Positions 6,309-47,400 of a stretch of DNA of 64,000 nt are shown here, one piece after another (within the stretch, counting starts at the first letter, position 1; each line of letters opens with the position of its first letter). Location of the stretch: contig OZ076412.1 in assembly GCA_964187785.1 (NCBI GenBank), positions 72,478,001-72,542,000 of the forward strand, in the 5' to 3' direction. The DNA is from Amphiscolops sp. MND2022 (lineage: Eukaryota). Under the pieces are notes generated by a model. The model made no database searches. It saw nothing but the letters and a program-made list of their open reading frames with translations, and was not told where the DNA came from. A program made the translations under genes and the position numbers.

Positions 6309-7627
6309 CAGGGATGGACGATATCTATCCAAGATATATATCATTGATATATATCACGATATCTATCCGATATTTATTTATTAAATATCATGATATATAT
6401 CAGAATTAACCGTTACAGAATATTTTCAGGTAGAAATGGGACGAAAACAGGCTGATGTTTGGGAAAAATTTGAATGAACTCAAAAACAAGGCAACAGTGG
6501 GACTTGGGATGTTTGCGAAACTTGCAGAGCAGGAATGCAGGGTATTCCCGAAAGAATGTCAAAGCACATTGACGCATGCGAAAGTGAATGTCCTCCAAAG
6601 GTGACCACCTAATCGCAAGTATCTTTCAAATGAGTTATTAAACGAAGTTCATGCCAAATGCCAAGAAAAAGCTTAAAAAATTGCTAGAAAAGGAGCAGGT
6701 GACTATGAGTTGAGATGGATGGTCTAACACACATAACGAACCTATCGTGTGTGTTGCTGCAACAACATCAAATGGAGACATTTCCCATCGATTTTATTAA
6801 AACCGCGGATGAGCCGCATACCGCCGAAAACTTGCAAAAAATAGCCGAAAATGCAATCAATAAGGGTGTGAGGGACTTTGGGTTTAAAGTTGTGGGCTTT
6901 GTGACCGACAACCCGGAAATGTTGCTATATTGCGAAGAAATTTGAGTATGGAAGAAAATTACAAAGACGTGCACATGTTTGGATGTGGAGCACATGTATT
7001 GAACCTTCTGGCCAAAGATTTCAAAAATTGTCAGTGGACAAGCAAAAAATGCTTGCGGGTAGGAGAAAAATGAATTTAACTCCTGCGCATCTCCTAAGTT
7101 TTTATTTGGACCCAAAGTATTTTGATGAAAAAGTCTTAGATGTTGATGAACGAAATTCGGCACTTGAATTGGCCCGCGATGCCGATCCTCGCCTTCTGAC
7201 AGTGATTGCACAATACAGGGGCAAGGCAGCTCCTTTCTTGAAGCCATTCTATGATACTGCAAAAAGTGTTTCTGCGAAAGACTGGTGGAATATCGTGGAC
7301 ATTGACCAGGATTTGAAGATTATTCTAGGTTTTCTGACATGCAATCCATCGACAGCACCATTGGAGAGACTATTTTCAACTTACGGATGGATCCACGACG
7401 AACATCGAAATCGAATGGGCAACGAAAAGGCGTCCAAACTATTGTTTTGTTTTAAGACATTGAATAAAACGATTGATTGAATCATTACTGAAAAAAAAAT
7501 AATTCATTTTTGAAATGAAACACTCTTTTTCAAAAATATCATAAATATCAAAAATATCAAGCAAAAAAAAGGAAAATATCCGATATTTTTGATATTTATA
7601 TAAATATCGGATATTTTTCCATCCCTG
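6309..7627 (+). mobile_element. hAT DNA transposon, internally deleted (1319 bp)
   Basis: TIRs CAGGGATGG (6309-6317) and CCATCCCTG (7619-7627); perfect 8-bp TSD GTTAATAC (6301-6308 and 7628-7635); GATAT/ATATC subterminal repeats at both ends. Confidence 0.95.
6436..7480 (+). pseudogene. hAT transposase remnant
   Basis: BED-finger-like DVWEKF..CETC..RMSKHIDAC from ATG 6436; catalytic DGWSN at ~6717; VTDN; CxxH motif GCGAHVLNLLAKD; C-terminal dimerisation motif STAPLERLFSTYGWIHDEHRNRM. Contains stops and frameshifts, and the central region is missing. Confidence 0.9.
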
Positions 7628-11238: not shown

Positions 11239-12718
11239 AGACCGATCAAAAGCAAACCAGTCGTTGAGGAAACTAAGATTAGACCAGCTAATGATTAAAA
11301 CATTGCGTGGCGTTGCTCATAGGTATTGGAACCGGTGCCTTCGGCACCTCCACGTCGTATGTTCCGTTCCACCCGTTATGCGGACGCCATATACGCTCCT
11401 CCGCTCGAGGATACTCAAGATGCGCAAGCGACATTTTCACACCATGTCATCACCAGGGGGGAGGGCAAAAGTTACTAGGTTACATACGGTTACAATTAGG
11501 TCACAATTCACTCGTTAGATTACATAAAATTACAATCGTAGAGTTTGCTTTTTGTGGTTTCCTGAGCGGGAAAATTCTCATTTCAGCTGTAAAGTCTGAC
11601 AATTTTTCTGATCTTTGATCTGCGATGTCCTAAAAAACAGGCAAATTTTGACAAAATGTCTAAACGTGGAGTCTCTTGCCCATATTGCGAAAATTCAATG
11701 TGAACAGTGAACGCTTTGTCGATTGATCCTTCAAAAACTTGATACTAAGCCAATCTTGGTCCTGATGCGGTAAATAAGACATTCAAGAAAAATGGAAAGA
11801 TATCGATAACGCTAAGCTAATGTTCGAATGCTGACTTTGCCAAAGAAGGTGACGTTTTCCGCGTCGTTTCTGTTCTCTTGCAACTGAAGAATCAATGATA
11901 TTCATGTGATAACATTCAGTAGTCTTTCCATAGAGTACATATAAGTAACTCCAAGCTCCGGGATCGTGGCAACAGCGAGTTAACAATCATGCTATTTTTA
12001 TTCGGCTTTTTTGCAAAAAAAGACTCGTACCAGTTTTTTTTATCCAGCTCACCTAGAAACGCCCAATTCTATAAATAAGATGGAATTCAGGAGTTCCCGG
12101 GTTCGAAACTCGCGCTGGCCTACAAATTTTTCAAGTTTATTTTGATAGACACGATCAAAGGGTCCTCTTTGGTGGATTTTTTCGGCACTGTGCAACTTAT
12201 TCCATTTTAAATTCCATCAAAGCGTCCCCATTAGATTTTTACAATGTTTTCACTTACGGAATTGCGTTTCTAGAACGTAAAGGGTTCTCTTTGGTTTTTC
12301 GGCACTGTGCAATTTATTTGAAAAAAAAATGTTTTTGATAATTTCAGTTAAGAAAAAGCGTTTTTCGAGTCTCAAGGATGACCTCTTCGGTTATTCATGG
12401 TACTGTGAGACGAGAGTTTTCTCCATAATTGTCCTCGAGCATGCTTGAAAGATTTCCCTTTTTTGGGAGCCTTAATCTAGGGCCGTTCCCGACTGTCATC
12501 TTATTTCAAAATCTCGAGCAGTTTCAGCAAATCGTGGAGCATGATTAAATATGCTTCGTTTTGCTATCTATTGGGCATTAATGTTTCCTAGTACCTGAAT
12601 ATGCCTTTTCATTTCAATTGCAGCTTGTTTTAGAAACCCTTCAATATGCTGGACTTCCCCACAAACTACTCATTCAAAAATTGGAAACTAAATTGAACCA
12701 TTTGAATAGTAATCTCAC

Positions 12719-12850
12719 CGAGTTTTCAGCATAATCTTCGGCCTCGGTTTTTGATTGCTGATCCGCCATTCCATCGTCGCCGAACTCAGTATTCTCCTCG
12801 TAGTTGGATGGCGAATTCACTGAGAAGGATACCTTGACGCTAGCTCCATT
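12719..12850 (-). CDS. C1QBP: C1QBP/MAM33 family, exon 2
   Basis: 132 bp, phase 0/0, acceptor TGTTTGCAG and donor GTGAG. Encodes NGASVKVSFSVNSPSNYEENTEFGDDGMADQQSKTEAEDYAENS, joining exons 1 and 3 in frame. Confidence 0.8.
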
Positions 12851-13185
12851 CTGCAAACACATTATTTCATGTGAAACATTGAAACACTTTTTTCCTAAGA
12901 AAATGACTAATATTAGTTCTAGAAGTTATTTTTTTCGGACTATTTCTGTCTGAAACTACTAGACAGTTGAAAAACAGTTTGCCAGTTGTTTCAGTGGTTA
13001 AAGGCGATCAGGCAAAAAATTTCATTTCTCCAAATTGAACTAAGCCGATATCGTTTTTTGATATGGCGTTTAAAACAAAATTGCACTAATTCTCAATTGG
13101 TTATTTCCGAATTAAAATACGTTTCATTGGAATGAAGTTGAAGATTCGAATATAACCACATTTTCAAATTGAAGTTTAAAAAAAC

Positions 13186-29941: not shown

Positions 29942-30141
29942 NNNNNNNNNNNNNNNNNNNNNNNNNNNNNNNNNNNNNNNNNNNNNNNNNNNNNNNNNNN
30001 NNNNNNNNNNNNNNNNNNNNNNNNNNNNNNNNNNNNNNNNNNNNNNNNNNNNNNNNNNNNNNNNNNNNNNNNNNNNNNNNNNNNNNNNNNNNNNNNNNNN
30101 NNNNNNNNNNNNNNNNNNNNNNNNNNNNNNNNNNNNNNNNN
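29942..30141. other. Assembly gap (200 N)
   Basis: Run of N; the round length suggests a scaffolding gap of unknown true size. Confidence 0.99.
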
Positions 30142-30305
30142 GACAGGTACCTGTCGCGGTGCTATATATACCCGATGCTGAACCACTTCTATCATCAATT
30201 GCAATTGTAAATACATAAACCAAGTCTGATCATAACTAATCAATCTCAATTCAGTTCTTCTATCCTACCCAACCTGTTTTAAAAGTTTCTTCAAAAGCAC
30301 CTCTG

Positions 30306-32849
30306 TCACTGACAGTTCCCAAAACACAGGCCGCATTGTCGATTTGAAGATTCATTAGGATCCGTTGCTACAAAATACGGATACGAGACAATTTGCAAAT
30401 TGGAAAGATCTGGTTTTTCACCAAAGAACATTTCGAAGGGCGTTTTACTTTTAAGTAAACTAACTATGAGGCAACGGTTTGAAATGTAAAAAGCAGTCTC
30501 TAAGGCCCGAACCCAAAAACTGAGTTTGGCTGTTTCTAGCATGCAGCGAGCCATTTCGACTGTAGTTCGCCAGCGACGTTCACTCACACCATTTTGATGC
30601 AGCGAACAATGGGCAGCATGCTCACGTTTGATTCGGTTTGATATACAAAAACTTCGAAAGGACTTGGAAATGTACTCTTTCCCATTATCAGAACGGATTG
30701 CTCTGGGTGTTCCCACTTGCGCAGAAAAAATCTTGAATTTATCTTGGCACTCCTCCTACGATTTGAGGAAATATACCGGGGAGTACCTGCTGTAGCTATC
30801 CGTAAAAGAAACACCGTAGCGATTGCCACCAAGCGAAGTATTTGGCGTCGGTCCCAAAATGTCAGTGAAAACCAGATCAAGTAGCGAAAATTTTCTTTTT
30901 TCCATTTTTCGCGATACTGGTTGCCGTCGTGACTTAGAAATCTTGCAAACTTCACAACAACAAAGTTTATCAAAAGCACTGTGTTTCAAGCTCATTCCCG
31001 AAACAAGACGAGCCAAACGTTTCACATTTTGAAAATGTTGTGACCAAGGCGATGATGCCACAGCACCGCTTCTTCGTTCTCGACGGAAAGAGATCAAAGA
31101 TCAAACGTCTTTCCTTTCAAAACGTAAAGATTAGCGTGCTCTTCAAAAAGAATAGTCGCTCTTCCATTGACGAAAATGCTCAGAGATTGTCCGAAGTTCT
31201 TTTGAGCCCCGTTTTAACTCCAATTGCTAACGCTGAACAAATTATGAGAATGATCAGGAAGAAAAAGACAGTCGGAAAACGTCACACAACGTTCGATCCC
31301 TTCTTTGTCCAAAAGGAGAAGAGAAAGTTTTCCAACACCCTCAACTTGCGAAAAAGTCCCATTCGCCTTTTTTACTTTGCGTTGTTTTTCTTCGCTAAAG
31401 TCGAAGAACAGAGAACAGTCAAAAACATGCGAGACAGCACCAGAGTCGATGACCGAGGTGTGTTCCTTCACTTCGCATTTTTGGCTAGTAAGTGCAGTCT
31501 CACTACCATCGCAAAATACAACTAAGTCCTCAGCTAGGTTTGACTTTCCTGTCTCAGCACTTGACTTAGGGTTCAAAAGAGGGTTTTTTGTGAAACATTT
31601 GTACTCTTCATGGCCAAAACGCCTGCAAAAGTTGCACTGGGATACTCTATAAGTGGCTTGTTTATGTCCATTTTTATCGCAACGCCTACATTTACCAGTG
31701 AACTTTTCAGGTTTACGCACGGAACTTTTTGCAACAGTTTCTTTGGATAACAATACAACATTTTCATCGCTAGCTGTCGCAGTTTGTAGGTTACGAGAAC
31801 TTTCGAAAGTTTTTAAATGCTTTCTTTACTTCCGCAGAAGACTCCTTATCTTTCAAAAAACCGTGCACAGTTTTGAAATAGTCATATTCGGAAGGCAAAC
31901 CCTTAAGAACTATCGAAGTTAACATGTTTTCAGAAACTCTCTCACCAGCGAGCTCCAACTGCTAACTCACATACTCCGCTCGAGTGAGGTAGTCAACCAT
32001 GCTCTCCGTGGGCTCAAACCGCAGGGTTGTGAAGTTCCCCAATAGGTCCATCAACCTCGGTGTTTCAGTGCTGTTGATGTGGTCCCGCAGTAGTTGCCAT
32101 GCCTTCGGACCATCACTTTTGCAGTCATTCGTCAGCATCAAGATACTGCGGCTGTCGAGACACTGTACCAAGTACGCCCAAATTTTGTACTTCTTGTCAT
32201 TCGTGCCAGCATCTGTAACATTCAGCACGTTCAGCAGCTTCTTCGTGAAACAGAACCCCTCGAATCGCTCCTGTCACATAGCGAAGTCTTCTTTCATGCC
32301 AGAGAACTGGAGATACTGCAAAGGTCGATCCATCCCTCACAAACTCCAACAAAGGCCCGAAACAGGCGGAAAGAAGTAACTGAAATGAAAATGGGGGCAG
32401 CAAAACAAGAATTCCCATGAAGATAAGTTAAAAAGTTAACGGAAGCGAAACAGCGGTAACAGACGGCATAAATAGCAAAAATTCTGTATATCCGAGACGC
32501 AAAAAGCAAAAAATGGACAGCGAAAAATAAGATCAGACGAGAATGGTGAGAATAAGGTGAAAAAGGACTTTTTTCAAAAAAAAACAAACGAACTAACCAA
32601 ATTGCTGGGTCCAAAACTTTTTAGGGCCTGAGCTCCTTCTGGTTGTAGCTGGGTTGTCGGATTGATGAAGATTGGTTATTGGTAATACTTTATTTTGAGA
32701 TGTATGTTGAGAAAGAGATTCAGTCAAGTGAAGATAAAAATATCAGGTACATGTTTACAAACAACAATATTAAATTAAATTAGTTCAGTCTGGTATAGTC
32801 TGAGTTGGTTGACCTTTAATGGTCCTTTGATCTTCATTGGTCTCTAACA
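30306..32849 (-). mobile_element. Ty1/Copia LTR retrotransposon, 3'-truncated (LTR, gag, protease, integrase; no RT seen)
   Basis: gag (KIWAYLVQCLD..DGPKAWQLL); CCHC knuckles; protease VIDSGAVSHV; integrase LVFTDILGP, TDSYSRY, IRSDNGKEY, QNGVSER. Many frameshifts. Confidence 0.92.
32619..32849 (-). repeat. Putative 5' LTR of the Copia element
   Basis: Minus strand starts TGTTAG, contains AATAAA, ends CTAAAA (degenerate CTAACA), followed by AGTTTTGGACCCAG resembling the Copia post-LTR GGTTATGGGCCCAG. Confidence 0.55.
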
Positions 32850-33104
32850 GTCTATCAATTCATGGGGTGACACAAATCGGGTCGGAAACTTTCGGTCGAA
32901 ATTCAAGCGATAAGCTGGTGTCAAAATAACGCTTTTATTGTGAAACAAGCAATTGATTATAAAACGTTTTTTACCCTAAACAACAATTCTAAACTAACAA
33001 GGAAACGACTCTATGAGCGTTGAAACCTGTAAACCAAGTTCCTATACTCCTACGAGCTTCCATACTATTTAAATGATCTTTTAAATGTTTTATTTAAAAA
33101 ATCT

Positions 33105-33993
33105 TTACACCCCAAACGATTTTTCTATACTAGCAATGTAACGACTCCAAGAGCGTAAATTCCTTTCAATGATTTTTCCATACAAACAACGACGGTAATA
33201 TTTTGTTTCATATTCATTCCAAACAACAGAGAAGTATTTAAAGACAAAACGAACCCCGGAAAAAAGTTTCGAGAACAGTTTACTGCAGTACAAAATGAAC
33301 TACAGACAGTTTTTCTCCAGATCTGCAGCTAAATAATGTCGAATCATCTGAATGTATGTCTTGACCGGGTAAACACCGCTGATTACTACAATAAGACATT
33401 TTATTAACGATACAGCAAACGTTTTTTTGATAATAAACCTCATCGACTTGAGGAATCTGTCTGTCTGACTAAAAAAGCCAGCCTTCCTGTCCCACAGTTT
33501 GCCCAATACTGTGTCCCAAGACTAATGACACCCTTTTTCGTCTACGGGAATGGATCTCTGGAATGCCACATCTTTATTGTTTTCAATTCCCAGGGTTGTT
33601 GTGGAAGAGTCATCTGCAACACATAAGATCCCTGCACAGCCAGACCGCGACAACAGGGCGATTCCAACAGCATTTTTCACGACTGCAAACAATGAGCACA
33701 CCTTCCCAATAGGGTGTTCGACGTTCCCATTTAAATTTTCATGAGTTGTATTGCTTAGGAAATTCTCTTCTTGGAACACAACTTTTGTCGACAGCATTTT
33801 AATCGAAATGTCCTCGCATTGCTCCGAAACCATTGTCACGAGAACAAGATTGTTCTTTCCTCCATACCAGCTTTAGGCTGCGAATGATGATTGATTTGCC
33901 ACAGTGGTCCAGGACTTTGCCACTTTCATGCAAAATTCCATTCACACATGGAAATAAGATGAGCGGAACTTCGTCAGTAGTTTTCTTAAACAA
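33105..33993 (-). pseudogene. Unassigned decayed coding sequence
   Basis: Successive minus-strand ORFs (33799-33993, 33522-33839, 33300-33506, 33105-33293), the last three in one frame separated by stops. No family recognised. Confidence 0.3.
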
Positions 33994-34231
33994 ATTCTAG
34001 TAATTACTTTCTTTAAACCGGTAACATTAAAATTTCTATGTTAACGTCGTACCCCAGGAATCTCTTGTTCTGAAAAAGTCAGTATCTAGTTTTACACTAT
34101 TTCTATACGTCTTTTTATAGTAACCACGTAGCGACTCCACGAGCTTCTAGAAAAAAAACAAAATGTTGCTATGTTTTGATTAAAAATCAAATATTTGACA
34201 TCAGTTTTTCAATATTTCAGACTTACAGGTA

Positions 34232-34819
34232 TCATGGAGAACATATCGACCGGCTTTTTCTTCTCGCATGCCGCGACTTTTGTCTGCTTTTTTGGCTGAT
34301 TGATCTGATTACTTTCAGCATCACTTTCGTCTGAGGCGCAACCAATTTCCGCAGGTCATAGTTTCTTCTTCGGAGTGTTCTAAAACTACTTATCAGTTTA
34401 GCGAACTCAATCGATTCCACTCATTTTCTGTATTCGTTTTCCTCAAGTACTTCCATTTCTTGAGGTACCGTGTCATTGATGAAGACGAACCCTTTTCGGA
34501 CAGAATCAGCTTGGGGAAACTTTATTGTGTCACCACGGGATTGGAATTTGGCTGCATAATCCAGCTGAAGTTTGTTATCGCGTCTTCTTTTACAGGGTGA
34601 AGTTTGGGAGATGACTTTTGTTTTCCTGATATTTCACTTCTGCGGTGTATTCCGGACAGTGTTGGCGATGTTTATTGTCGATTTGTTCTTTCCAAATTCT
34701 ATCCAGCGAACAACTACTTCCCTCTTCCCATTAAATCTGTTTACTTCAGCTTGCCACCAGATAAAACATTCGTCTATAGCATCGACAACTTCATTCAACT
34801 TGAACTGTTTCCACAACAT
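34232..34819 (-). pseudogene. Tudor/MBT (Royal family)-like domain protein, two in-frame stops
   Basis: One frame reads FKLNEVVDAIDECFIWWQAEV..EVVVRWIEF..K*NIRK..SRGDTIKF..GFVFINDT..RK*VES, matching the Royal-family beta-barrel pattern by eye. Confidence 0.5.
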
Positions 34820-35314
34820 TGTGAAAATTCAACTCTGATTTGTAATGGAGGATACTGGTTTGTTAATAGTGGATACTAGACAAATTCGAAGTCAAGTGAT
34901 AAACATTCAGGTGTTTGAACTACTAGTTGTAAACCTTGTGTCTTACACAGAAAGCAAAATTGAGTCTCACAGTCGAAGTGAACTCGATGATAACCTCAAA
35001 CATAACAATAAGGTGTCAATGTGGGACTCAAATTTAACACGCATTCCTAACTAAAAATATTTGAATACTCGTTAATATCAGTGTCTGCCAGGTAAAAGGG
35101 TGTCAATGAAAAAATTGCTCGCTAAAACACGCTACTTTCAAGCCCATTTTGTCCTCACTTTTATATAACTGAGCAACTTTGCAAATCGAACAAAATAGAG
35201 CTTTGGAACGAGAATTCAATAGTAACATTCTGGTCATTCAATACCATTGATTATCCCCTTTTAGATAAAATTTCCTTAGCCAATGAAACTAACAAATATC
35301 AAGAAGCTTCAAAA

Positions 35315-37479
35315 TTGACAAATCATGTCAATTGTGGAACCTCGTTGAATCCCGAAGATCTGATCATTAAATGGAAAAAAGATAGCCAGAAAAAACACTC
35401 GCTTCATATCGAGGCACATACAATGAAACTGATGGTTCTGAGGGGTGTGCGAAACATCCCATGGACAAATGCTCAAAGGGAACTCATCATTGAACTGCTG
35501 GGCCTAGATTTGTATCCGACTTGCAACCAAGAGGTGAAATCAACACCACTAAAAGACGTGGTACACAGAACAGTTGGCACACAAACCCGAGCAGATGAGT
35601 CACTTGACCCGGAAACAAACAGTCAACTACATACACAGCTCCGCGAGTAAAGAGAGCTGTGGGATTTCGGAAAAGCCATTTACTCATTAGAAGTATGTTC
35701 TGCTTCCCGCAAAAAGAAACAACGTTGAGTTCGACTCTCTAACGTACGTCGTTCTTCAGTATTCCAAAAGCAAAACAACCAGAGTACCTAAAGTCTGTTA
35801 TTAGAAAACTATTTCCAAACTTACAATTGCGAGAAGCAATAATTTTCAATATTGCAATTTCCCCCAAATCAGGCGAAGCAAAAGATTTGTTGTTCACCAT
35901 CTCTTCGAATTTGAAAATCAATAAAAAAAGGAAAACTCCGAAACATCTTGCCATAATAACGTTCAGTCCAGACATACCAGAGTCAGATCATGGAAAACTT
36001 CATTTCGGTGTGTGAGCCTGAAGCCACCTCTAGTAGTTTTTCTTGAAGCATCCACGAAAACATGTGATGAAATTAGTTTTAATTCATGGACCACTGCCTT
36101 CACTATAATTTTTCACATGTCTTATCATTCAAGCATAGATTCATCACAGCATGCATAGTAATTTGTCCTTCGATTCTACGGCTTAATTCTACGTATGATT
36201 TGAAATCATTTCAATGTATATTTATAAGTCAAATAAACTTATTGCTTCTAGACAGAATTCAGAACGATCCCTTGAGCACTTCGTAACGACATTTCTGTAA
36301 TGTAATACTATCTAATTCAATACTAGCAGTTCGTGGAAAAGATAGCCTATTCGATCTGGAGCAAAATAAGGGGGCAGAGACAGCTGGAAAACAGGAGACG
36401 GTTTTGCTGTACATGCAAACAAAAGAGTTGAGCACAAAAGGGGCGGTGGTTACATGTTCCGGCGACAACCCTTTTCTGTGCCGTCTCATATTGGCTATAG
36501 ACAGCGATGCATCGAACTTGTACTCGTCTCATTTGGCTTTATAAGAGGGATCCAAAAGGTTTTTGCCTACAGATGTGGATAAAAATACTGGATTGCGCCA
36601 CGATCACAACGCGCTCTTCAGAAAAAAGTTCCACAAACCTCACTCGTGTATCTTGAGGATATAAGATGTGTCGTGCCAGATGTTACGCACATGATCACAA
36701 GGCAGCACAGAAAATAGTAAACGAGAAACCGATATACAAAGTGGCACTACAGCAGTTGGAAGAAATCTGCACTCGGAGGGCGATGAAAAAACAGAAATTC
36801 GAGTTTGACCTGCAAGTGAAAGGCTCTGATTTGAGAAGAGGGGCTGTTGAACCTGTATCAAAATCCGGAACATCAACGCCAGTTGCTATAGCTGAAAATG
36901 ATGAATTTGAACAAGATGTTCCGAACCTTTTTGAGAACGCGTGGGGAAAGGAAGTTCTTTTTGAGAACCGAGGCTGCAACACAAACAAAGAAATGGCACG
37001 TGCCGCCACCAACGCTTTTGCAGTTCTCAAATCAATGCACCCGCATCTAAAGAAGTCTGACAATTTTACAACAAACGATTGCGGGAATCTTTTGCACGGA
37101 AGTCTAATCAAACGCATCATTCTTTTGCGGTCATCCAAATACGGACTGGACGTGGATCAATTTTAATTTTGGTCTGAGGCATAGTATCAGTCAAGTCATC
37201 GCTGCTGCTTTTTTCCGGAAACGAAAGTCGGACCCCCTATAAAAATTGCTGAAACCTAAAATAAAGCACGCAGGCTTTGTTCATAGTCCCTTGCATCACA
37301 TGTGTGAAGCCATGGAAAAATCAAACCATCATGCGCACAAGGATTTTCAAACAAAAACGATGCGAGGCGTACGAAAACTGTATAACACTGATCCTTCAAT
37401 TCACGAAGGTTTTTTTGTACTTCCCTTACCTCGACATAGTTTAGAAACACAAGAAAATAGCAGTGAGCGATTTATTTAA
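35315..37479 (+). pseudogene. RAG1/Transib-like DDE transposase, decayed and probably spliced
   Basis: SGDNPFL (D at 36464), VVPDVTHMITR (36679-36690), TPYK (37232), HMCEAMEKSNH (E at 37315), in the order seen in RAG1/Transib (GxD..DxLH..TxY..SExxExxNK). Frameshifts between blocks; the 5' part (35315-36015) is less certain. Confidence 0.6.
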
Positions 37480-37579
37480 CCATCTTCGGAAACAATACGA
37501 TACAACAACACCTTTTTTCGTTATCTGCAAAAAGTTGTCAGGCCTGCGATTATAGATAAAGGTGCCACTAGAGATTCAA

Positions 37580-38165
37580 GCATGTTGTTGAGTCGATTTT
37601 GATTTCACGTTGTTGGATTTATCTGGAAATACTGCAAAAGCTCTAGAGGATACAATACCCCGTTTGGGGGGAGGCGTTGAGTAAAGAAAAAGCTCTTGGT
37701 CTATCCAAGCGTCATTATAGAACCCCGAATTGCTTTGTTGTTTCGAAGAACGACACTGAATTGCTGAGGGCAACGCAGTGTTAGGAATGCTCGGCTTCTG
37801 GATCGGACAGCGACATATGTACGTCGACCACTGAAAGGAAATCAGCTGCATCGAAAACAAAAGCAGCAGCTCAAGGAACAGCCAGGATATGCAGACAATT
37901 AGCTGCCACTGATTTCAATTTTATAAACGTAATTATAAAAACATACATTGAAGATGTTGAGAAAAATGGCTGTGTTTTGGATCCTTCCGAATACGTGTTG
38001 TCAGGTAGTGGAACAATTGAGCGAGCCTGTGTCAAAGATCAACGCCCACTGTTCGAAAGACAAAAAAATGCCGAAAGATCAGAGAGTGATTACTTCCTTG
38101 AAACGTTTGCGCATGAGATCAAGATCGAAAGTAGAAGCACACGATACATTTGCGGCTGTTTTTAA
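37580..38165 (+). pseudogene. BRCT-like domain downstream of the transposase
   Basis: FTLLDLSG..LEDTIPRLGGGV, then NCFVV, then FNFINV..YIEDVEKNGCVLDPSEYVL, across a frameshift and stops. Confidence 0.45.
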
Positions 38166-39990
38166 GCAACGAACGATCAAAAAAACAACAAGATTATACT
38201 TTTTCGGCACGAGACATGTAATTTCAATCAGTAATAATTTGATTTGTTCCAGTTTGAATCATTTCCATTCAAGCTAGTCAGCTTCACCAGTTTGCAATGT
38301 AGGAATTCTCCAGCATGCACGAATTGAACAAGTTGTGTAGTCAGTTTTGTGGATTCTTCAAACTACATTGGCTTAGCTGGCGTTTTAAATAATCGCGAAG
38401 AATTGCGAAAGTAACTTTGAAGCATGGTTTGAAGAATCTAGATATCAATGTTAAACCATTGTGAATTGTTAATTAAAAGTAGTAGTGCACTGATTTTGAA
38501 CAATTGCTGAAAGCAAATTTATTGGTTCTTCAAATAGCAATAGCTCAGCCCTCGTTTAAGAAGCGCTGAAGTATTGAGAAAGTAACTTTTGCCCAAAAAA
38601 ATCATCAATAATTGTTGTAGTCGAACTAATGTCTTGATAAAATTCCAATACCAGCTTTCAGAGTCTTTACAATTTTTTAAAGAATTTCATGAGCATTTCA
38701 AAAATGAGTTGTTCAAGGAATGTAGCTGAAATTTAAAGGGGTGTTCAAGGTTACTCGTGTTTGATACAGTAAAAGATTTAACGACACTAGGAGCGTTCAA
38801 GTAATAAATTTTAATCAAGTTGAATTACCAATCACAAAATAATACAGAAGACGAAAAACAGAACGATATTTCTTTTTTAAATGCGAAATATGTGGCCCAG
38901 AGAGGAGATTCTTTCATAAGAGATGGACAACTAAAAAAGAGGACGAAAAAAGGATGCAGTGGCTCAGTGATCTTACAATGTGGGCTCTTCCTATCAAGGT
39001 GAAGAGGAACAAGACAGATGTCTTTCGAGGCATCAATTTAGAATCGTCTGTTTCGAGTGCGATGTCGACGGGCAGACAACGCAATCAGCTTCGCTTTTTT
39101 CTCACGGAAATTATCAACTGCACCACCAACCCCAATTTGCAGTTGCATTGGACACACATGAACTGTCGTATAAGTCATTGTTTTCAAGATTCATCAGTTT
39201 TTTGGGATTTTCATTTATGATTTTCGCAATGACTGCCAGGTGTCTTTTTTGTTAACATTCCCCACATTAGGCGCGAAATCTTTAATTGCCCCCAGTATCA
39301 TTACAATCTTTCGGATTTTTACTTTCAGATGATAATTATGTCAGTGAACAATTACTATTTTACAACAAAATGTGCTTACGTGTAGGGACTAACAGAACAG
39401 ATCCGAATTTCCCAGCAAAACAATTGTTTTTGCAACATCACATTCGAGTGTCATGACTTTACGCGCTGTGAATTACCCACCATTTCAATTCACAAAAGAT
39501 GTGAGTGTGTTTGGTGACCCGTTTTGTTGAACATTCATATCGGCGAAAAATATTAGAGTATTCAAAGCGTCGAAAGAATTCGAAAAATTTTAAAGGAATT
39601 TGAATGAAGGGTTTGTCACGTGACCATGACGCGCAGAAATTACTGCGTCATGTAAACAAACTTCAAGTTCCATCGCTTTATCCAACAAGGTTTTATGTTT
39701 ACTTGGATGAATTTTCTGTCACGTGACCATGACGAGCAGAATTTACTGAGTCGTATGAACATACCTCACGTTCCCTCTCTTTATTCAAAAACGTTATTTA
39801 ACAACCTATGCGTGCTGACAATCAGTCCTGCCCCCTGCTGAAAGATTTGATCCAAATCGAAATTTCCAATTTGAAGATTCCGAACCAAAAATCATCACTG
39901 AGAACCAATTCAATCTTCATATTCAAATAAAGTAAGTCAAATTTCATTTTTTCGGTACAATTTGAGCTTTGCTGTCCCAAAAATTTACAT

Positions 39991-40296
39991 GTAACGGTTC
40001 CATGAGCGCGATTAATGCAAGATATGAAACAAACATTGAGACAGATGTAACGACCACATGAGCGCGTAAAATAAAGGACATGAAATTATTGTTTTGCCAG
40101 ATGAAAGTAACGGCTACATGAGCGCGATAAACAGATGATAAAATAAACAATTATATAGATGTAACGACTCCATGAGCATGATTCATGTAAGATATAGAAC
40201 AAACGTTTAGACAGGTGTAACTACTCCATGGGCGCAAAAAGCATAGGGCAAGAAAATAATGTTTAGCCATGTGATTGTAACGGCTCCATGAGCGTT
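39991..40296 (+). repeat. Higher-order minisatellite: six copies of GTAACG(G/A)CTCCATGAGCG
   Basis: Starts at 39991, 40047, 40107, 40161, 40217 and 40277; periods 56/60/54/56/60, i.e. a duplicated 170-bp trimer. Confidence 0.85.
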
Positions 40297-40414
40297 GAGA
40301 CAGATGAGTAAACGAGATAAAGCCATAAACATCACTCTCTTTAAAACCAGAATACTCCAGTGAGAACAACAGATGAAGTGTTCCAAGTACCCTTACGAAT
40401 CGACCAGGTTGTTT

Positions 40415-43400
40415 AATTACAACAGACACGTCTAAAAATGCAAAAGACGCAAGGCAGTGATTGATGTGGCACCCGGAAGTGGTACCTTCATTTGCAACCT
40501 GTGTCTACAACCTGTGTCTGCAACCTGTGTCGACGAAAGATACCCTCAGACGCCATCAGCAAACCCAGAGCTGTGCCAAGAGAGCAAATGAGCTGGCTCA
40601 ATGTCACTCCCCACCCATTAAGAAATACAGTAAGTTACTGATCCCAATGAAAAACATGGAGAAACGGGCTTGTTACAATTGATTAACAGTATCTTTTATA
40701 CTTTTGGCAAAACATTATAGCAGGACAAAATAATATGATAAACTGATGAATGTTCTTGCAAAATAGAATTAGAATTGTACCGCCCATCTTTTAGGTTGGT
40801 TTCAGATTTAGTTCAGAGACTGTAACGGGGAAACTCAAGCCGACGAGTTGTTGTGGGTATGAGCAGCGTTTTTTCTCACGGAGCAATTTGCTGCGTCATC
40901 TGGAGCGAGTTCCCAATCACAGGTTCAAAGACATGAACTTCTCGCGGTTCTCAAGAAAGTCGGCGAAGGATGGCACTAGCAGGTTTGTGACATTCGATCT
41001 CAAAGTTTACAGAAAACAACAGATGTCAGAATAAAAAATTCTCATGCCTAGGAATGGTTTGAAAGTAAATTTTTCTTCCGAATTGGTTAGCTTTGCAAGG
41101 AAAACAAAGACCCTTTACTGTACTGATAAATATAGGTAGTTGTTCTTTTCTTCTTAGGTGCTACGAGCATATCGAGGGAACGAGTCAGAGTACCATCCCA
41201 AAGTGCGTTGTATGGCATGGGGCCGTAGAACACCAGACGAAGAAGGTCTTTTATTATTTGTCCCAAGGTTTCCCCACCCTGTGCAGAGGCGCCAGTGACA
41301 ACGCAGAAGGCCTCGTAATCCCACATATTCCCGGTTACCAGGCAACTCAGTTTCTGACTCTAGCAGAACATCTGTTGCAGCATGCTGTCAACCCGGATGT
41401 CCCCATTTCTGCAAAGTCAGCAAAACGAGGTGAGATTTTAAAGTATAAACTGGTGTTGTCTTGCAGAACAACTCCTGAATTTGAAGAGCAAGCACACAAA
41501 CTCCTATTTTTATCGCTTTGAAGAATCCACAAAATAGAATCTTTGTTTCGTTGTGAAATCATGGACCACTGCCTTTAACTTAAAGTTTCAATGATTTATT
41601 ATCCAGTGGTAGATTCGTTACAAGGTGCTTCGTCTTCTTTGTCCCAGTTCGACTGCGTTCACGCAGCCAAAACAAAATAGTAAAATCACACTTTCTGTGG
41701 AGAATCCAAAAAATTGTAAATTTTGTGTTGTTCTGAAATCATGGACCACAACTTTTAAACTAACGTTCCAATAGTTTATTATCCACTGTTAGTTTCTTCA
41801 CAACATCTTCAATCACTATAATCTCAATTTTACTGCGTTCACGCAGTCAATAAAAATTTGTTAAAACCATCCGAACTAGATTACAAAATGTTTTTGCAGA
41901 TACGAAGTTTGACCAAAGAGCAATACCTGGCGGAGCAGCGTGCCGGCCCAAAAGCAACTCGCAAAGGACTCTTTCACGTCCTAGATTTCACCCTTCAACA
42001 CGCGGTTATTAGATGTTAAGATGAAATCAAAGCTAAATAAACAAAAAAATGAAGAAATAATACCCTCAATATAAACCTTGATTTGCTAAATTAGGCTCTG
42101 TAGTTTGCTTTAGAGTGGGGGCCATATAAGTGATTATGATTGGAAAACAACATCTTCGTTGCGATTTCTCTTCCACAAATATAAGAATGCACATTCAACC
42201 TTATTATTAGATCATGAAAACTGGTTACGTTTCAAAAATTTTCACCACCTACTTCCGTCCAAAAGGTCGCAGTCGACTGCTTTGTTGAGTCGAAACTGAC
42301 AGCCTTACAGAGCAATGGGAACTACCTTTTGCTTTCCAACGACAAATGTGTCACCCCTGGCTCATTGATTTCGCGACTACGTCAGTTTTTTATGTGGTGC
42401 TGCTTGGCGAGAAAATTTTCTGGCTTGTTGAGCCAACAAAGAAGATTATACAACTCTTCCAGCAGTACAGTGAGAAAGATCCTTGCCGCCTGTAAGAATA
42501 AACAACATACTTTACGTCTATTCTCTAAATTTATGTTATTCGATTAAACTTTGGAGGTATAGACAATCCTTTCAGAACATAAATGTCATTATTCACATAA
42601 ACCGAAAGATAACCCAGCAACTAATTTTTATCCATATAAAGTCCCCATATATGTTTTTATGTGTGTCTTTTAAAACAACATCATTTTGGGACCTGGAGCA
42701 GTTGGAGGGAGAGGCTGTCAAAGGATTCACGCGAGGGCAGGAGATGCCATTTTTGTGCCTACAAAGTGGATTCACTGTGTCCTAACCAACAGCGATTCAG
42801 TGGCACTCCGTGCCAATTTTCTGAGTTCTGGGCACAGTAGTCAATTGTGCATGCCCAATTCGACGTTGAAGAAGATACACGGTAAAGTTTTATACTTACT
42901 AAGTACACAACATCATTTTACCTCTTTTGCCATCACTTTAACTGAAACGAGAAATTGAAAAAATCTTCTGAAAAAAATACATATAGCAGAAAGCACCCCA
43001 AATATTATGTAACGAGTCCAGGAGCAAGTTCGGTTATCATTTCATTTTGTTATAAAAACACAACCATCCCATTACTACTTTGTAACGACGCCGGGAGCAT
43101 CATTGGGGATCAATTCAAAACAGAAACCTGTCTCCCAACAGAAATTTGTAACGATTCCGGGGGCAAATTTTTAGGAATCATTAGCCTACATCTCAAACTA
43201 ATGTTATATCTCATTAGCACCTTACAATTGTCTCAACTAACACCCCTTCCCAACTGTTCCTGTTTCCCTTGTTTTGGTTGTTACCTTAAGTATAAATATT
43301 TTTTCCAGATATCCCGGTTTGACGACATTGCTGGAGTGTCTTGCTGTACAACTTCCGCAAGCTGCGCCCGAACTACTTAAGTGATCACTACAAGCACCTC

Positions 43401-43452
43401 TTTCAAAAAGTAGCAGAACACATGAAGGATGAAGAAGCCTCCACTTCACAAG
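40415..43452 (+). pseudogene. Spliced 2x C2H2 zinc finger + JmjC (KDM2/KDM7-like) gene, inactivated
   Basis: ZnF1 FICNLCLQPVSTKDTLRRHQQTQSC (donor 40630); ZnF2 CCGYEQRFFSRSNLLRHLERVPNH; EGLVIP (donor GTGAG ~41429); LFHVLDF; YLLLS..TPW(L)IDFATTSVFYVVLLGEKIFWLVEPT; GDAIFVPTKWIHCVLTNSDSVALRANFL; RYPGL. Frameshifts at ~40500 and ~42356. Confidence 0.8.
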
Positions 43453-44404
43453 TAAGTACATTAGGAACCATGCTCGGAAAACAGAAAAGTCTGTATGGGG
43501 TCGCCTGGCAGTGTATATGAAGGGATCGATCAACAATTGATTTGTCTATATTCTCATCAAAAGGGACGCAGTCTCCTTGTTCCTCTCATCAGAAAGGAAT
43601 GCAGTAGCGCAGTGGATCTCCAATTGTGCCTTCCTATCACTGTGAAGTGGAATACAACGATGTCGTTTACCCAATCGATATGGGGAACACAGTGTCGTCT
43701 GTATAGAGTCGCCCACCAGCGTATATTTGAGGGGATTGATCCAATGGTAGACAACGCTACTAGTTTTGCTACATACCCAAGGGAAATATCAACTGCGCCA
43801 ACATCCCCAATAAGCCGCTGCATTGCAAACATACTTAAACTCACACAAATTTCATCGTTCGTTTTTCTGGTCGTTCAATTTCTCTGAATTGTAATTTTTT
43901 GAATTGATTCGATTTTTAACAGATCTAAGTAATGGTTGAATTTCAAACTGGAGAACAATTTAATAAACCAAATAAGTTTATCTCGATTGATAACTTTCCA
44001 AAACCTATTTGCCAACAAAACCTAACTGCATCTTTGAATTTCATGAGAAATTCATATAAAAACAGAATCTTCCGCCCCTCCCCGAAAACTTAGTAATATG
44101 AGTAATAACTCATTTATAATTCAAATAAATACAGAAGTTTAGACCCTCCTTCCCCCCCGAAGTACTTTAGCATTGAAACTAACTAAAAACTAATTCAATT
44201 GAAACAACTTCCGTTTTCCCCGGTAGTATGGTGAAATCAAACAAAACCACGAGACATCCACAAAAATTTATTATTGGTATACGGTGAATTCAGGCAAAAC
44301 GACGTATACACAAAATTGTAGTAGATCTAATGCGTGACCTAATTAGTGAAGAATCCACGCAAACTAATACTTGCCTAAAGAAGAATCCACACAATTTCAA
44401 GAAT

Positions 44405-47400
44405 TTAAATAAACAGTGAGAATTTTGTTTCGCTGATTCTTCGCAGGTTACACACGGTATTGGATTGGTGCAAAAATCCAGGAAAGTGTTCCACTTCCTT
44501 TTCCTGATTCCTTGAAAACTCACGTATTGTAATCGATGTGAAGAATTCATACCACACTGCAACAGATCTGTTGCAGTCGAAATTTTCCCGTCTGGCGTCG
44601 TATTGTTGCCTGCCCAGGAATAAACCCTGTGGAAAGTGTCCTTCTAAGAGGACAATTGCCTCAAACTTCAAATCGACACCGTCGACGTTGATTGCTACGG
44701 GGACTGGTGCAATTGTCTTAACCTTTTGTATTTTCGCAAATTCTACCTATTCCTCGTAAAGTGTGGTTACGGTCTTGATGTTACTTTAACCCGTATTCCG
44801 ACACAATTCTTCTTTTAATTGGTGCGAAGTTAAGTTGGGACGTGTTTTTTGCTCTGCAGAGAGTAGTAAGTGAATCGAGATCAGTGTCTCACTCGTACGG
44901 CCGCAGTTGATGCACAACGTCACCGTTCCTTGCATTGGTAGTGCCGCAGGAAAGGTGTCGTTGTTTATGCATTGTTGGGTTAGACGGACATCTATTCGCC
45001 GGCGAGATTTTTGTGACACGAGTTGACTTGCTGTTGCACTGGTTTTCCTGCTCGATCCTTCAACGTACAATCAGCTAAAAAGTTTTGATTTGGACAATTT
45101 GCGGGGCCGCCGGATGGCGGAGCTGCGCATTCGCAAGTTTTGATGTACCGTGAATAACAATGCTTCTAACGTAGGCGGTTCCTCAAGGTGTTTTTTTGTG
45201 CGTACATCAAGGCTAAGTTGCGTGTCGGTTCAATGCTACACACTCCGTCGAAGACTTTTTGCATTGCTTCATTTTCCGTACGGTGTGTATTTCGTTCGGG
45301 AAGCCCTGGCTAGTCAGCCCTTCCAATACATCTAAATACGGCATGTGGTCCCCATCACCCGTTTGATTGCGCGTACGGAATTGTTGTTGTATGTAGATCT
45401 TATTAGAACCCGTTCCGCATCGGAGCGCTAGTAGCGCGAAGACCTTCTTATCTGTATCTCGCTCAGCCTCAGACTTATTCGTGATGTAGTCTCTTGCTTC
45501 ATTCTTTAGAAACTCCACTGTAGTCCATGCTTTGTCTAAAGGTGTGACTTTCGCGTGTGCTTTTTCTAGGTAGCGTTTCATCAGCATCATCCAACCCTCA
45601 ACCAACCGTGTGTCATGGTACTTGGTTGGCTTATTCTTTGTTTCTTTAGCCGTTAGTAGCGGTTCCAGACTTTTAGAGACTGCAGTACCTATAGCCTCAG
45701 CTAGTGTTTGCCTTTGCATTGTGCTTGGTGTGTCACCTTGTGATTCTTCTTCCGCCACACTCAAGATCCTCTCCGTAGTGGTTTTTTTGTGTTTTGAAGA
45801 CTAACAGCCTCGGTGAGTTATCCCCAAAAGATGAGATCGGCGAGATAGCTGGGAGCGTGGTCATCGTCGAGTTTCCCGTTTGATTTTCCATGCGTTCCGG
45901 TGCCATTTGGTAATCTGTGTTGCCACTCGCCGTTTGAAATTCTGTGTCATTACAGTGCATCTGCCAGCTAAACCGTCAGACATTTTTCTGTGCGTGTATG
46001 TCCTCCGATTCCGCAGACATGCCTTGAAACGTATAAAATCGGCAATTTAGCACTGATTTTGCGGGATCCACGCCACGAAAATCAGCGTTTTTAGGAATCC
46101 GAGGGCATGGGTTAATACGTTAGCCGGTTTCAAACTGCGGAAACTGGGACCAAAAATATGCCAACAAATGCCGAGAAGATGCCGCCAAATTCGTGTCTTG
46201 GATTCCACGAAATGCATTATAACCAATCAGAAGGCTGTAAATGTTAGCGACTTAGTTTGCACTTACGTTTTAATTAGCTGAAATCAGTTTTAAAAAGCAA
46301 GCAGAGAGTAAATACAAAGTCAATTACCACAAACAAGTTACAATCAATGTCTCCCTTTCCGTAAAACTGTCGGCTTCTCTTCCTTTCATCTTTATATTGG
46401 TGATAATATTATTGCCAGACTCTACTATACTATGGTACTACAAGTATACCAACTGCATTTGAATTTGAAAAAATTAAATTTGAAAAATATTTCAATACTT
46501 CACTATACTATGGTGGAACATACTATGACAATGAAAATTGGATTGAAAAAGTCAACTAGAATGCACTAGAAACGACTCTGGTTACATTTACTATACCCTA
46601 TTTATTCTTAAGACAAAAGCTTTTTTTCTACCAACTGTAGTGAAACTGAAAAAAAATGAAAATTTTAATGAAATAATTGGTGTGGACTTGGAGATATTTT
46701 GGTTCCAATTGTGGGTCAAAACGTGAAGCTTCATTGAAAAGAAGTGTGTTTCCGAACATTATCTTTTTTAGCAATTTTCATCTAATTTCAAGAGATTAAA
46801 TGCCGAATCATAATATAATTGTTCCGGAATGTAGGTGCACGAATTTCTCTACTGAATGAAATTCTGGAATCTGAGCACTATTTGCTTTCTACGTAATTGG
46901 CCCCATTGAGGCCTGGCATAAGTGGCAATTTATTGGCCCCATTAACTTGCCAAGACACAAAAATAAGGAAAGTAAAATTTCAACTTCAGAGGAAGCTAAG
47001 GCAGTCGACATCAAAGGGGAATGAATTCAGTGTACGCGTCCCGGTTTCCAAGAATTCCAAAAACGCTCAGAAAAAGCTTGCCTATGCACTGTAATGGTTG
47101 CCATTTGACGTTCGGAATTGCATGTTGCCACTCCTCAGGCCACTGGCTGTTGACTAAAAGTCTCCAGTCGTCGAAGCACCTCTGGCATAGGGGTCAAACG
47201 ATGGCGGCCAGACACATCATGGTACTTCAATTCATTTTGACTGGCTCTTGGAATTTGAATTCTCCTCTCTGGCATTTTTTTGAACATTGCTGTTGGTTTT
47301 AACTTGGTCTGTTTGATATGCTCGGCCGATGGTCCAGTCTTGGATTGCGAGGCTACTTTCCCGAGTCCTAGCCCTTGCGGAGGAAAAGCACTTGTTGATG

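Follow-up and report, generated by a model that had tools for sequence, protein, structure and literature searches.

A probable relic of a DNA transposon with a RAG1-shaped transposase and chromatin genes in the genome of Amphiscolops sp.

Genes and extent of the relic

The stretch analysed here, referred to throughout as the window, comprises 64,000 nucleotides of the Amphiscolops sp. MND2022 genome (assembly GCA_964187785.1, contig OZ076412.1, positions 72,478,001 to 72,542,000), and the coordinates of features are counted from its first nucleotide. Positions 32931-44605 very probably represent a large DNA transposon of the cut-and-paste type, now dead, that carried a RAG1-shaped transposase together with chromatin genes maintained by selection. 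A first-pass annotation, made from the sequence alone, had placed a mobile unit at 32850-44300 and had described three decayed parts: a minus-strand gene, a transposase with a BRCT-like tail and a C2H2-JmjC gene. All three are present, and stop-free pieces together with tblastn searches using intact relatives show each of them to be broken by frameshifts or stops between 33.3 and 43.4 kb. The unit is real, and its extent is corrected to 32931-44605 on the plus strand. Homology to a copy on C10 begins at 32931, the right terminal inverted repeat (TIR) ends at 44605, and the whole is collinear with four other copies. Pfam searches with the window's own pieces yielded only a marginal JmjC match. 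Thus, intact copies were needed for the assignment of domains.

The first gene, termed reader-like, lies on the minus strand. Its N-terminal exon (34212-34885) encodes a putative Royal/Tudor-like domain followed by a coiled coil; it aligns by tblastn with L013:4636-5358:- at 66-70% identity and contains one frameshift. The C-terminal exon (33303-34035) encodes a domain of unknown fold, aligns with L013:3751-4494:- at 74-77% identity and contains one break. The Tudor-like open reading frame (ORF) of the first-pass annotation corresponds to this minus-strand gene, while its Tudor-like nature is weakly supported: Pfam matches neither the relic nor an intact copy. The nearest named clusters in a protein language-model search with the N-terminal exon were PWWP, Tudor, PHF20L1, Agenet, MSL3-chromo and SAWADEE, every one of them Royal-family, with scores of only 0.76-0.83, and a language-model search with the C-terminal exon returned nothing. 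These clusters offer a lead, at most, that the N-terminus may belong to the Royal family (Tudor/PWWP-like).

The transposase gene follows on the plus strand. Exon 1 (35183-36040), traced by tblastn with L013:5750-6850:+, spans the N-terminal part as far as the first catalytic strand ('WGDG') and contains frameshifts and stops. Exon 2 (36323-38165), also traced by tblastn, encodes the rest of the RAG1-like core and a BRCT tail at approximately 37668-38165, and is interrupted by several frameshifts and stops. Altogether the relic transposase shows at least four frame changes and several stops.

The third gene, at 40319-43378 on the plus strand, encodes a C2H2-JmjC protein of PHF8/KDM2/KDM7 type and was delineated by tblastn with intact exons of L018 (Pfam JmjC, 9.7e-5). 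Its exons lie at 40319-40706, 40801-40983, 41147-41437, 41813-42034, 42239-42492, 42561-42838 and 43243-43378, of which the zinc-finger exon, the HxD exon and the last, C-terminal JmjC exon are frameshifted. Intact copies read 'TPWHIDFASTSV...GEKIF' and 'WIHCVLT' and retain the HxD...H iron ligands. The best PDB matches of the intact JmjC exon are PHF8, KDM2A and KDM7A, at 2e-10 to 3e-9, in agreement with the KDM2/KDM7 assignment of the first-pass annotation. That annotation had counted two C2H2 fingers; Pfam identifies three at the N-terminus of intact copies, where the host enzymes have PHD or CXXC modules. No PHD or CXXC domain was found in the JmjC protein.

Relative to full-length elements the relic is both shortened and rearranged. 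The leftmost ~640 bp, with the left TIR, are missing from it and were sought elsewhere in the 64-kb window without success. The SET region of the full-length elements is deleted, and no SET gene was found in the window. By blastn orientation, the segment at 39595-43477, which holds the JmjC gene, is inverted with respect to full-length subfamilies A and B. The right subterminal region (44269-44605, plus strand) shares 84% identity with the corresponding end in subfamily A and 76% with that in subfamily B, and it ends in a right TIR at 44584-44605 with two mismatches, although the first-pass annotation had reported that termini were not found. The relic is 5'-truncated and belongs to an old, rearranged subtype. 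The right subterminal region also contains the palindrome CTGCAACAGATCTGTTGCAG at 44553-44575, ~30 bp inside the right TIR. It occurs at the right ends of subfamilies A and B as well, not at the left end, and is kept between subfamilies that are otherwise ~75% identical.

Copies, termini and layout of the family

The Tudor-like, transposase and JmjC blocks each have at least 40 matches in the 1.07-Gb genome, at 70-84% identity. The order of blocks seen in the window recurs at no fewer than four other loci (C10:10.33 Mb, C5:24.37 Mb, C11:36.42 Mb and C9:59.90 Mb), which share the internal junction at window position 43476/43477 that is common to all window-type copies. Among the matches listed, JmjC and transposase segments lie within 15 kb of one another at 18 or more loci, and at 24 or more a reader-like segment directly neighbours a transposase segment. 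The three blocks are also linked, in a different internal arrangement, inside 20-kb full-length elements bounded by TIRs. The first-pass annotation had inferred a single mobile unit, and had named as the finding that would speak against it JmjC and Tudor-like segments that are single-copy or never linked to the transposase elsewhere. The blocks are instead multicopy and in the same order at other loci, and the linked blocks and TIR-bounded elements support the single unit.

Intact copies, whose search the first-pass annotation had proposed, exist in two younger subfamilies. Copies of subfamily B (C9, C8 and C6) are 98-98.6% identical to one another over ~19.6 kb, and those of subfamily A (C5, C1 and C4) are 97.5-99.8% identical, the C5 and C1 copies agreeing at 99.8% over ~20 kb. 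The sequences flanking these near-identical copies are unrelated, which identifies them as insertions rather than segmental duplicates. The family has been recently mobile. Intact members are 20.4-20.6 kb long; complete examples are the 20,597-bp element on C9 (C9:496207-516803) and the 20,445-bp element on C8 (C8:19039532-19059976), both of subfamily B. The subfamily A copy on C4 is complete with both TIRs and, at 14,993 bp, is a deleted copy.

The TIR reads CATTACGACGCCAAWCRGGGAA. Both subfamilies end in the same inverted repeat of 22-26 bp, CATTACGACGCCAA(A/T)C(A/G)GGGAA, such that an element has the form 5'-CATTACGACGCCAA...TTGGCGTCGTAATG-3', that is, CATTACGACGCC ends. The first-pass annotation had expected TIRs of the CAC type; the termini are CATTACG...CGTAATG instead. 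A genome-wide search with the 22-mer, allowing up to two mismatches, gave 471 forward and 497 reverse matches, compared with none for a reversed control pattern. Among the first 100 ends listed, 15 forward/reverse pairs are 0.4-29 kb apart. Pairs separated by 0.4-2 kb (for example C2:25723170-25723661, C2:61420236-61420648 and C1:50773241-50774215) suggest short non-autonomous deletion derivatives.

The 2-bp sequences flanking the element are identical on both sides in three of the four complete elements (TC/TC, GG/GG and GT/GT) and are read as target-site duplications (TSDs); by our own binomial estimate, a match in three of four would arise by chance with a probability of ~0.001. No 5-bp flank repeat occurs in any of the four, a small sample. 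The element that does not fit is the subfamily A copy on C5, in which the left terminus carries a 329-bp tandem duplication (L013:2096-2425, C5:18745095-18745424), the inner copy of which starts with GATTACG rather than CATTACG.

The gap-free elements of subfamily B contain, in order, the left TIR, the reader-like gene (minus), the transposase (plus), a tandem array, a SET gene (minus, two exons), an extra ORF, ~5 kb of repeats, the C2H2-JmjC gene (minus) and the right TIR. The genes of subfamily A follow this order too. The extra ORF, found in subfamily B only, encodes 236 residues between the SET gene and the repeat region (L017:8549-9256, minus); its Pfam match to Rua1_C is weak and falls below threshold (7e-4). 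In subfamily A, the equivalent region contains no ORF of 110 residues or more. Each of the three subfamily A copies includes a 200-N gap (C5 22401-22600, C1 22611-22810 and C4 14924-15123, in coordinates of the joined copies). The gap in the C5 copy covers the zinc-finger exon of the JmjC gene, and the C1 sequence past 22317 matches no other copy. Evidently, the assembly struggles with these elements.

The first-pass annotation had noticed non-coding motifs shared among the parts of the relic. This observation holds: the 18-bp motif TGTAACGACTCCRKGAGC occurs 13 times with up to four mismatches, always on the plus strand and always within 33001-43147, and the same scan found it absent from the other 52 kb of the window. 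Six of these motifs form an array at 39990-40293 (plus), at intervals of ~55-60 bp and immediately upstream of the JmjC gene; the array occupies this position in the window type, subfamily A and subfamily B alike, and the motifs switch strand along with the inverted JmjC segment. The 18-bp motif and the TIR share the core T.ACGAC.CCA. Two other repeats were located by blastn. A remnant of a 171-bp tandem array, ~1.5 units long, follows the transposase gene at 38304-38589 (plus), by comparison with subfamilies A and B, and in subfamily A elements the array is present twice (element coordinates 6910-7324 and 12086-12945). A segment at 43584-43880 (minus) belongs to an internal repeat of the family, present in two to three copies per full element.

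The relic sits among retroelements. On its left, a minus-strand Copia element with gag, protease and integrase ORFs (Pol_BBD, E 9.6e-11) occupies 29942-32930, including a 200-N gap at 29942-30141, and abuts the truncated edge of the transposon. On its right, a minus-strand ORF at 44606-44746 ('VDGVDLKFEAIVLLEG...') resembles a retroviral or Gypsy protease by eye and has no Pfam match. The Copia neighbour named in the first-pass annotation is thus borne out by Pfam, and the Gypsy neighbour stands by eye only. The frame of the protease-like ORF is cut exactly at the transposon end, 44605/44606, and the transposon was therefore apparently inserted into an older retroelement.

The transposase and its place among related enzymes

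An exhaustive HMMER search assigned to the transposase family 262 cluster representatives at E<=1e-3, all of them unnamed and up to 1,301 residues long. The core has no Pfam match. KDZ, P element, hAT and MULE were considered as identities and rejected: no Pfam model of any of the four matches, and the P element and Hermes transposases give much lower structural Z scores. The C-terminal tail of an intact copy (L013:7015-8805) matches Pfam BRCT (PF00533) with 22.1 bits against a cutoff of 21.3, which places the BRCT-like tail of the first-pass annotation narrowly above the threshold. Three distant homologues match BRCT_2 at ~3e-4, below cutoff.

Structure prediction was performed with AlphaFold2 on residues 200-860 of P0002, a homologue 44% identical to the element transposase, using an alignment of 47 sequences. 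The model has a predicted local distance difference test score (pLDDT) of 88.4 and a predicted template modelling score of 0.85. The top 48 chains retrieved by Foldseek from the PDB are all RAG1, HzTransib or BbRAGL (E from 2e-6), and the P element transposase ranks 49th. Superposition by VIA-align yields a Z score of 19.5 for RAG1 over 416 residues (RAG1 459-1008) with a root-mean-square deviation of 4.0, followed by 17.6 for HzTransib and 16.6 for BbRAGL. Lower scores were obtained for the P element (10.7), ISCth4 (8.9) and Hermes (7). A structural search independent of Foldseek, against 48,161 representative chains, returned the same order.

The acidic residues conserved in the family, numbered as in P0002, are D370 and D374 in strand 1, D454 right after strand 4, and E744 and E747 in the motif 'E..E.SNH'. 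In the model these positions fit a DDE triad, an assignment that we infer. The motif 'E..E.SNH' resembles what we take to be the corresponding RAG1 motif, 'E..E.GNK' around E962. Taken together, the model and the tail match support a DDE enzyme of RAG1/Transib architecture with a C-terminal BRCT domain. The RAG1/Transib-like call of the first-pass annotation thus holds by structure and fails by sequence profiles. Transib proper is not supported, because the termini are CATTACG rather than CAC and the apparent TSD is 2 bp rather than 5 bp. The transposase is a previously unnamed RAG1-like lineage, unseen by sequence methods.

Where this lineage belongs is less firmly fixed. We know of no CACTA-Mirage-Chapaev (CMC) transposase with a solved structure, so RAG1 may head the PDB ranking only because nothing closer is available, and the enzyme may lie elsewhere in the CACTA-Mirage-Chapaev-Transib (CMCT) assemblage, for example as a Mirage-like enzyme with a 2-bp TSD. 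We give such a placement outside Transib/RAG an even chance. The apparent 2-bp TSD and the CA...TG termini, as seen in the CMCT clade (PMC12730594), argue for it. AlphaFold Database (AFDB) clusters from many eukaryotes match the model better than any PDB chain does (1e-13 to 1e-6); a C. elegans PHD protein appears at 6e-7, clusters annotated as DUF4218 (CACTA-type) and CxC1 (KDZ-type) appear at ~1e-6, and no hidden Markov model links the family to RAG1. On the other hand, Z scores of 17-19.5 to RAG1, Transib and BbRAGL over ~415 residues lie far above those of the P element and hAT enzymes, and the likeness of the 'E..E.SNH' motif to RAG1 also favours a Transib/RAG relationship.

Chromatin genes, their selection and comparison with known systems

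Intact elements carry, besides the JmjC and reader-like genes, a SET gene of SETD8/KMT5A type (Pfam SET, 7e-13), whose best PDB matches are SETD8/KMT5A at 2e-9. It has NH...N and ELxFDY motifs. Relatives of the partnership between SET gene and transposase were found in other samples. On one contig (L036, Logan ERR15087781) a SET gene (33.5% identity, E 1e-28) borders a 33%-identical transposase, and on a second contig, from ENA, a SET gene lies beside a 37%-identical transposase. Four further contigs with distant transposases are too short for neighbouring genes to be seen. The presence of SET beside transposases of 33-37% identity in other samples indicates that the partnership is old. The genes on L036:1-10457 are apparently intronless, with a 419-residue SET protein divergent from a 1,301-residue transposase of the family. 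The downstream ORFs start with a region that is Tudor-like by eye and end with a weak match to the C-terminus of the reader-like protein (E 2e-4).

Between subfamilies A and B the ratio of nonsynonymous to synonymous substitution rates (dN/dS) is 0.11-0.19 for every gene, with dS from 0.8 to ~2, and the cargo genes do not differ from the transposase; dS is near saturation and the ratios are therefore approximate. On this comparison all four genes are under purifying selection between the diverged subfamilies, which for the cargo fits a function for the element. Several young copies have all cargo exons open and the HxD...H motif of JmjC and the NH...FDY motif of SET intact. Since the chromatin genes have been kept by selection, it is probable that the element acts on chromatin to its own advantage.

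An alternative accepts a single transposon and regards the SET, JmjC and reader-like genes as passively captured host genes with no role for the element, in the manner of Pack-MULE or CACTA-like elements. Capture of host fragments is frequent in large CACTA-like elements, a search for RNA data returned none, and the window type numbers at least five copies even though it has lost SET and carries the JmjC segment inverted. Against these points stand cargo dN/dS values equal to those of the transposase at dS of at least 0.8, open exons and intact catalytic motifs in several young copies, and the presence, in other samples, of contigs that link SET to transposases of 33-37% identity. Passive capture is thus improbable. 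Another alternative is that unrelated relics have piled up by chance, or that the stretch is a host segmental duplication in decay. In its favour, the relic is without a left terminus, every one of its genes is broken, and nested retroelements surround it (Copia on the left, the protease-like ORF on the right). This reading is hardly credible, being refuted by the comparison of copies: at least four other loci repeat the order of blocks, TIR-bounded 20-kb elements contain all three pieces, the copies have the 43476/7 junction in common, the window retains the right TIR, and the genome holds ~970 TIR ends.

Several observations weigh against reading the relic as a RAG1-shaped transposon with a selected chromatin cargo, in addition to the approximate nature of the dN/dS ratios. 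Neither Pfam, nor phmmer or hmmsearch against the PDB, detects a sequence-profile link to RAG1 or Transib; the PDB set, searched with phmmer and with whole-family (A1) and C-terminal motif (A3) profiles, includes RAG1, HzTransib and BbRAGL. Pfam gives the Tudor-like call no support, and the AlphaFold2 model of the N-terminal exon is poor (pLDDT 36.5). The linkage of JmjC to the transposase is seen within this genome only. Assembly gaps in the three subfamily A copies make the internal layout partly uncertain, and the TSD is based on four elements, one of which does not fit. Finally, four sequencing runs contain matches to the family and none of them is recorded as RNA; contigs from these runs span introns and look like collapsed genomic repeats, and so say nothing on expression or splicing.

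The transposase would bind the TIRs, and perhaps the internal 18-bp motifs too, and would excise and reinsert the element. The accessory proteins would act on histone lysine methylation, at H4K20me1, H3K9me or H3K36me, the marks of their nearest solved relatives. The site of action could be the copies of the element itself, or else the break or the target, and the outcome might be resistance to heterochromatin silencing or the steering of repair or target choice; the first-pass annotation had likewise suggested that the cargo could counter silencing or direct insertion. H4K20me1 is both written and erased by the closest solved relatives of the cargo, and break signalling involves BRCT domains, which makes a role in repair or targeting as conceivable as anti-silencing.

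A more specific proposal is put forward tentatively, and its truth in full is doubtful. The SET8-like writer, the PHF8/KDM7-like eraser, the Royal-type reader and the transposase BRCT domain might constitute a self-contained histone-methylation system, which the C2H2 fingers or the transposase would bring to the 18-bp motifs and TIRs of the element itself. Such a system might keep copies out of heterochromatin, or might tie excision and integration to target choice or to double-strand-break repair that depends on H4K20, analogous to the RAG2 PHD finger guiding RAG1. The partnership of SET and reader would then be ancestral to the unnamed RAG1-shaped lineage across eukaryotes.

The relic itself is a fossil, whose value is that of a pointer to intact copies such as those at C9:496207-516803 and C8:19039532-19059976. 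If the cargo has the role proposed, these provide a natural system in which to test how a genome parasite manipulates host chromatin. A RAG1-shaped enzyme with ends and TSD unlike those of Transib also supplies wider relatives for the origin of the RAG recombinase fold, which bear as well on how the dependence of RAG on a chromatin-reading partner arose.

Transib and the RAGL (ProtoRAG) elements share with this family a transposase core of RAG1 architecture and TIR-based cut-and-paste transposition, and, as in RAGL, where the PHD finger of RAG2 reads H3K4me3, the transposase of this family is accompanied by an accessory gene that may read chromatin. The family differs from both in the absence of detectable profile similarity, in CATTACG... 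ends in place of the CAC heptamer-like termini, in an apparent TSD of 2 bp instead of 5 bp, in the BRCT domain fused at the C-terminus, and in its 20-kb length with SET, JmjC and reader-like genes. A kelch gene of RAG2 type was not seen in the element.

Elements of the CMCT assemblage have CA...TG termini and TSDs of 2-5 bp, and their similarity to RAG1 is sometimes visible to HHpred only (PMC12730594). The present family is alike in its 5'-CA...TG-3' termini, a TSD within the 2-5 bp range and a relationship to RAG1 at the level of structure only, as well as in its large size with extra genes and in internal motifs related to the ends (cf. the subterminal repeats of CACTA). Its termini and TSD thus fit the CMCT clade and not canonical Transib. 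It departs from the clade in that it does not keep the canonical C(2)C/H(3-4)H motifs: the only conserved cysteine or histidine columns in alignment A1 are C523, H528, H741 and H751, and no CxxC or HxxxH pair is conserved there. No Pfam model or name was found for its lineage.

Enzymes carried by transposons act on DNA methylation in fungi (TET/JBP) and in plants (VANC), and a lone SET gene occurs in oomycete elements. Precedent thus exists for single transposon-borne epigenetic cargo genes, including SET (PMC12730594). The first-pass annotation had known of no described animal Transib/RAG-like element with a JmjC cargo; a full-text literature search returned no description of an element that combines a histone-methylation writer, an eraser and a probable reader and that is both recently active and under selection. 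The fungal TET/JBP-carrying transposons (KDZ, Plavaka, ESTA and others), the plant VANDAL elements with VANC and the SET-carrying HarbingerS and MuDR elements of Phytophthora are likewise DNA transposons with a cargo directed at epigenetic marks, presumably in an anti-silencing role. In contrast to these, the family described here combines a writer and an eraser of histone lysine methylation with a reader-like gene in one element, and it is built on a different transposase lineage. What is new is therefore a DNA transposon with epigenetic cargo, itself of a known type, on an unnamed RAG1-like lineage.

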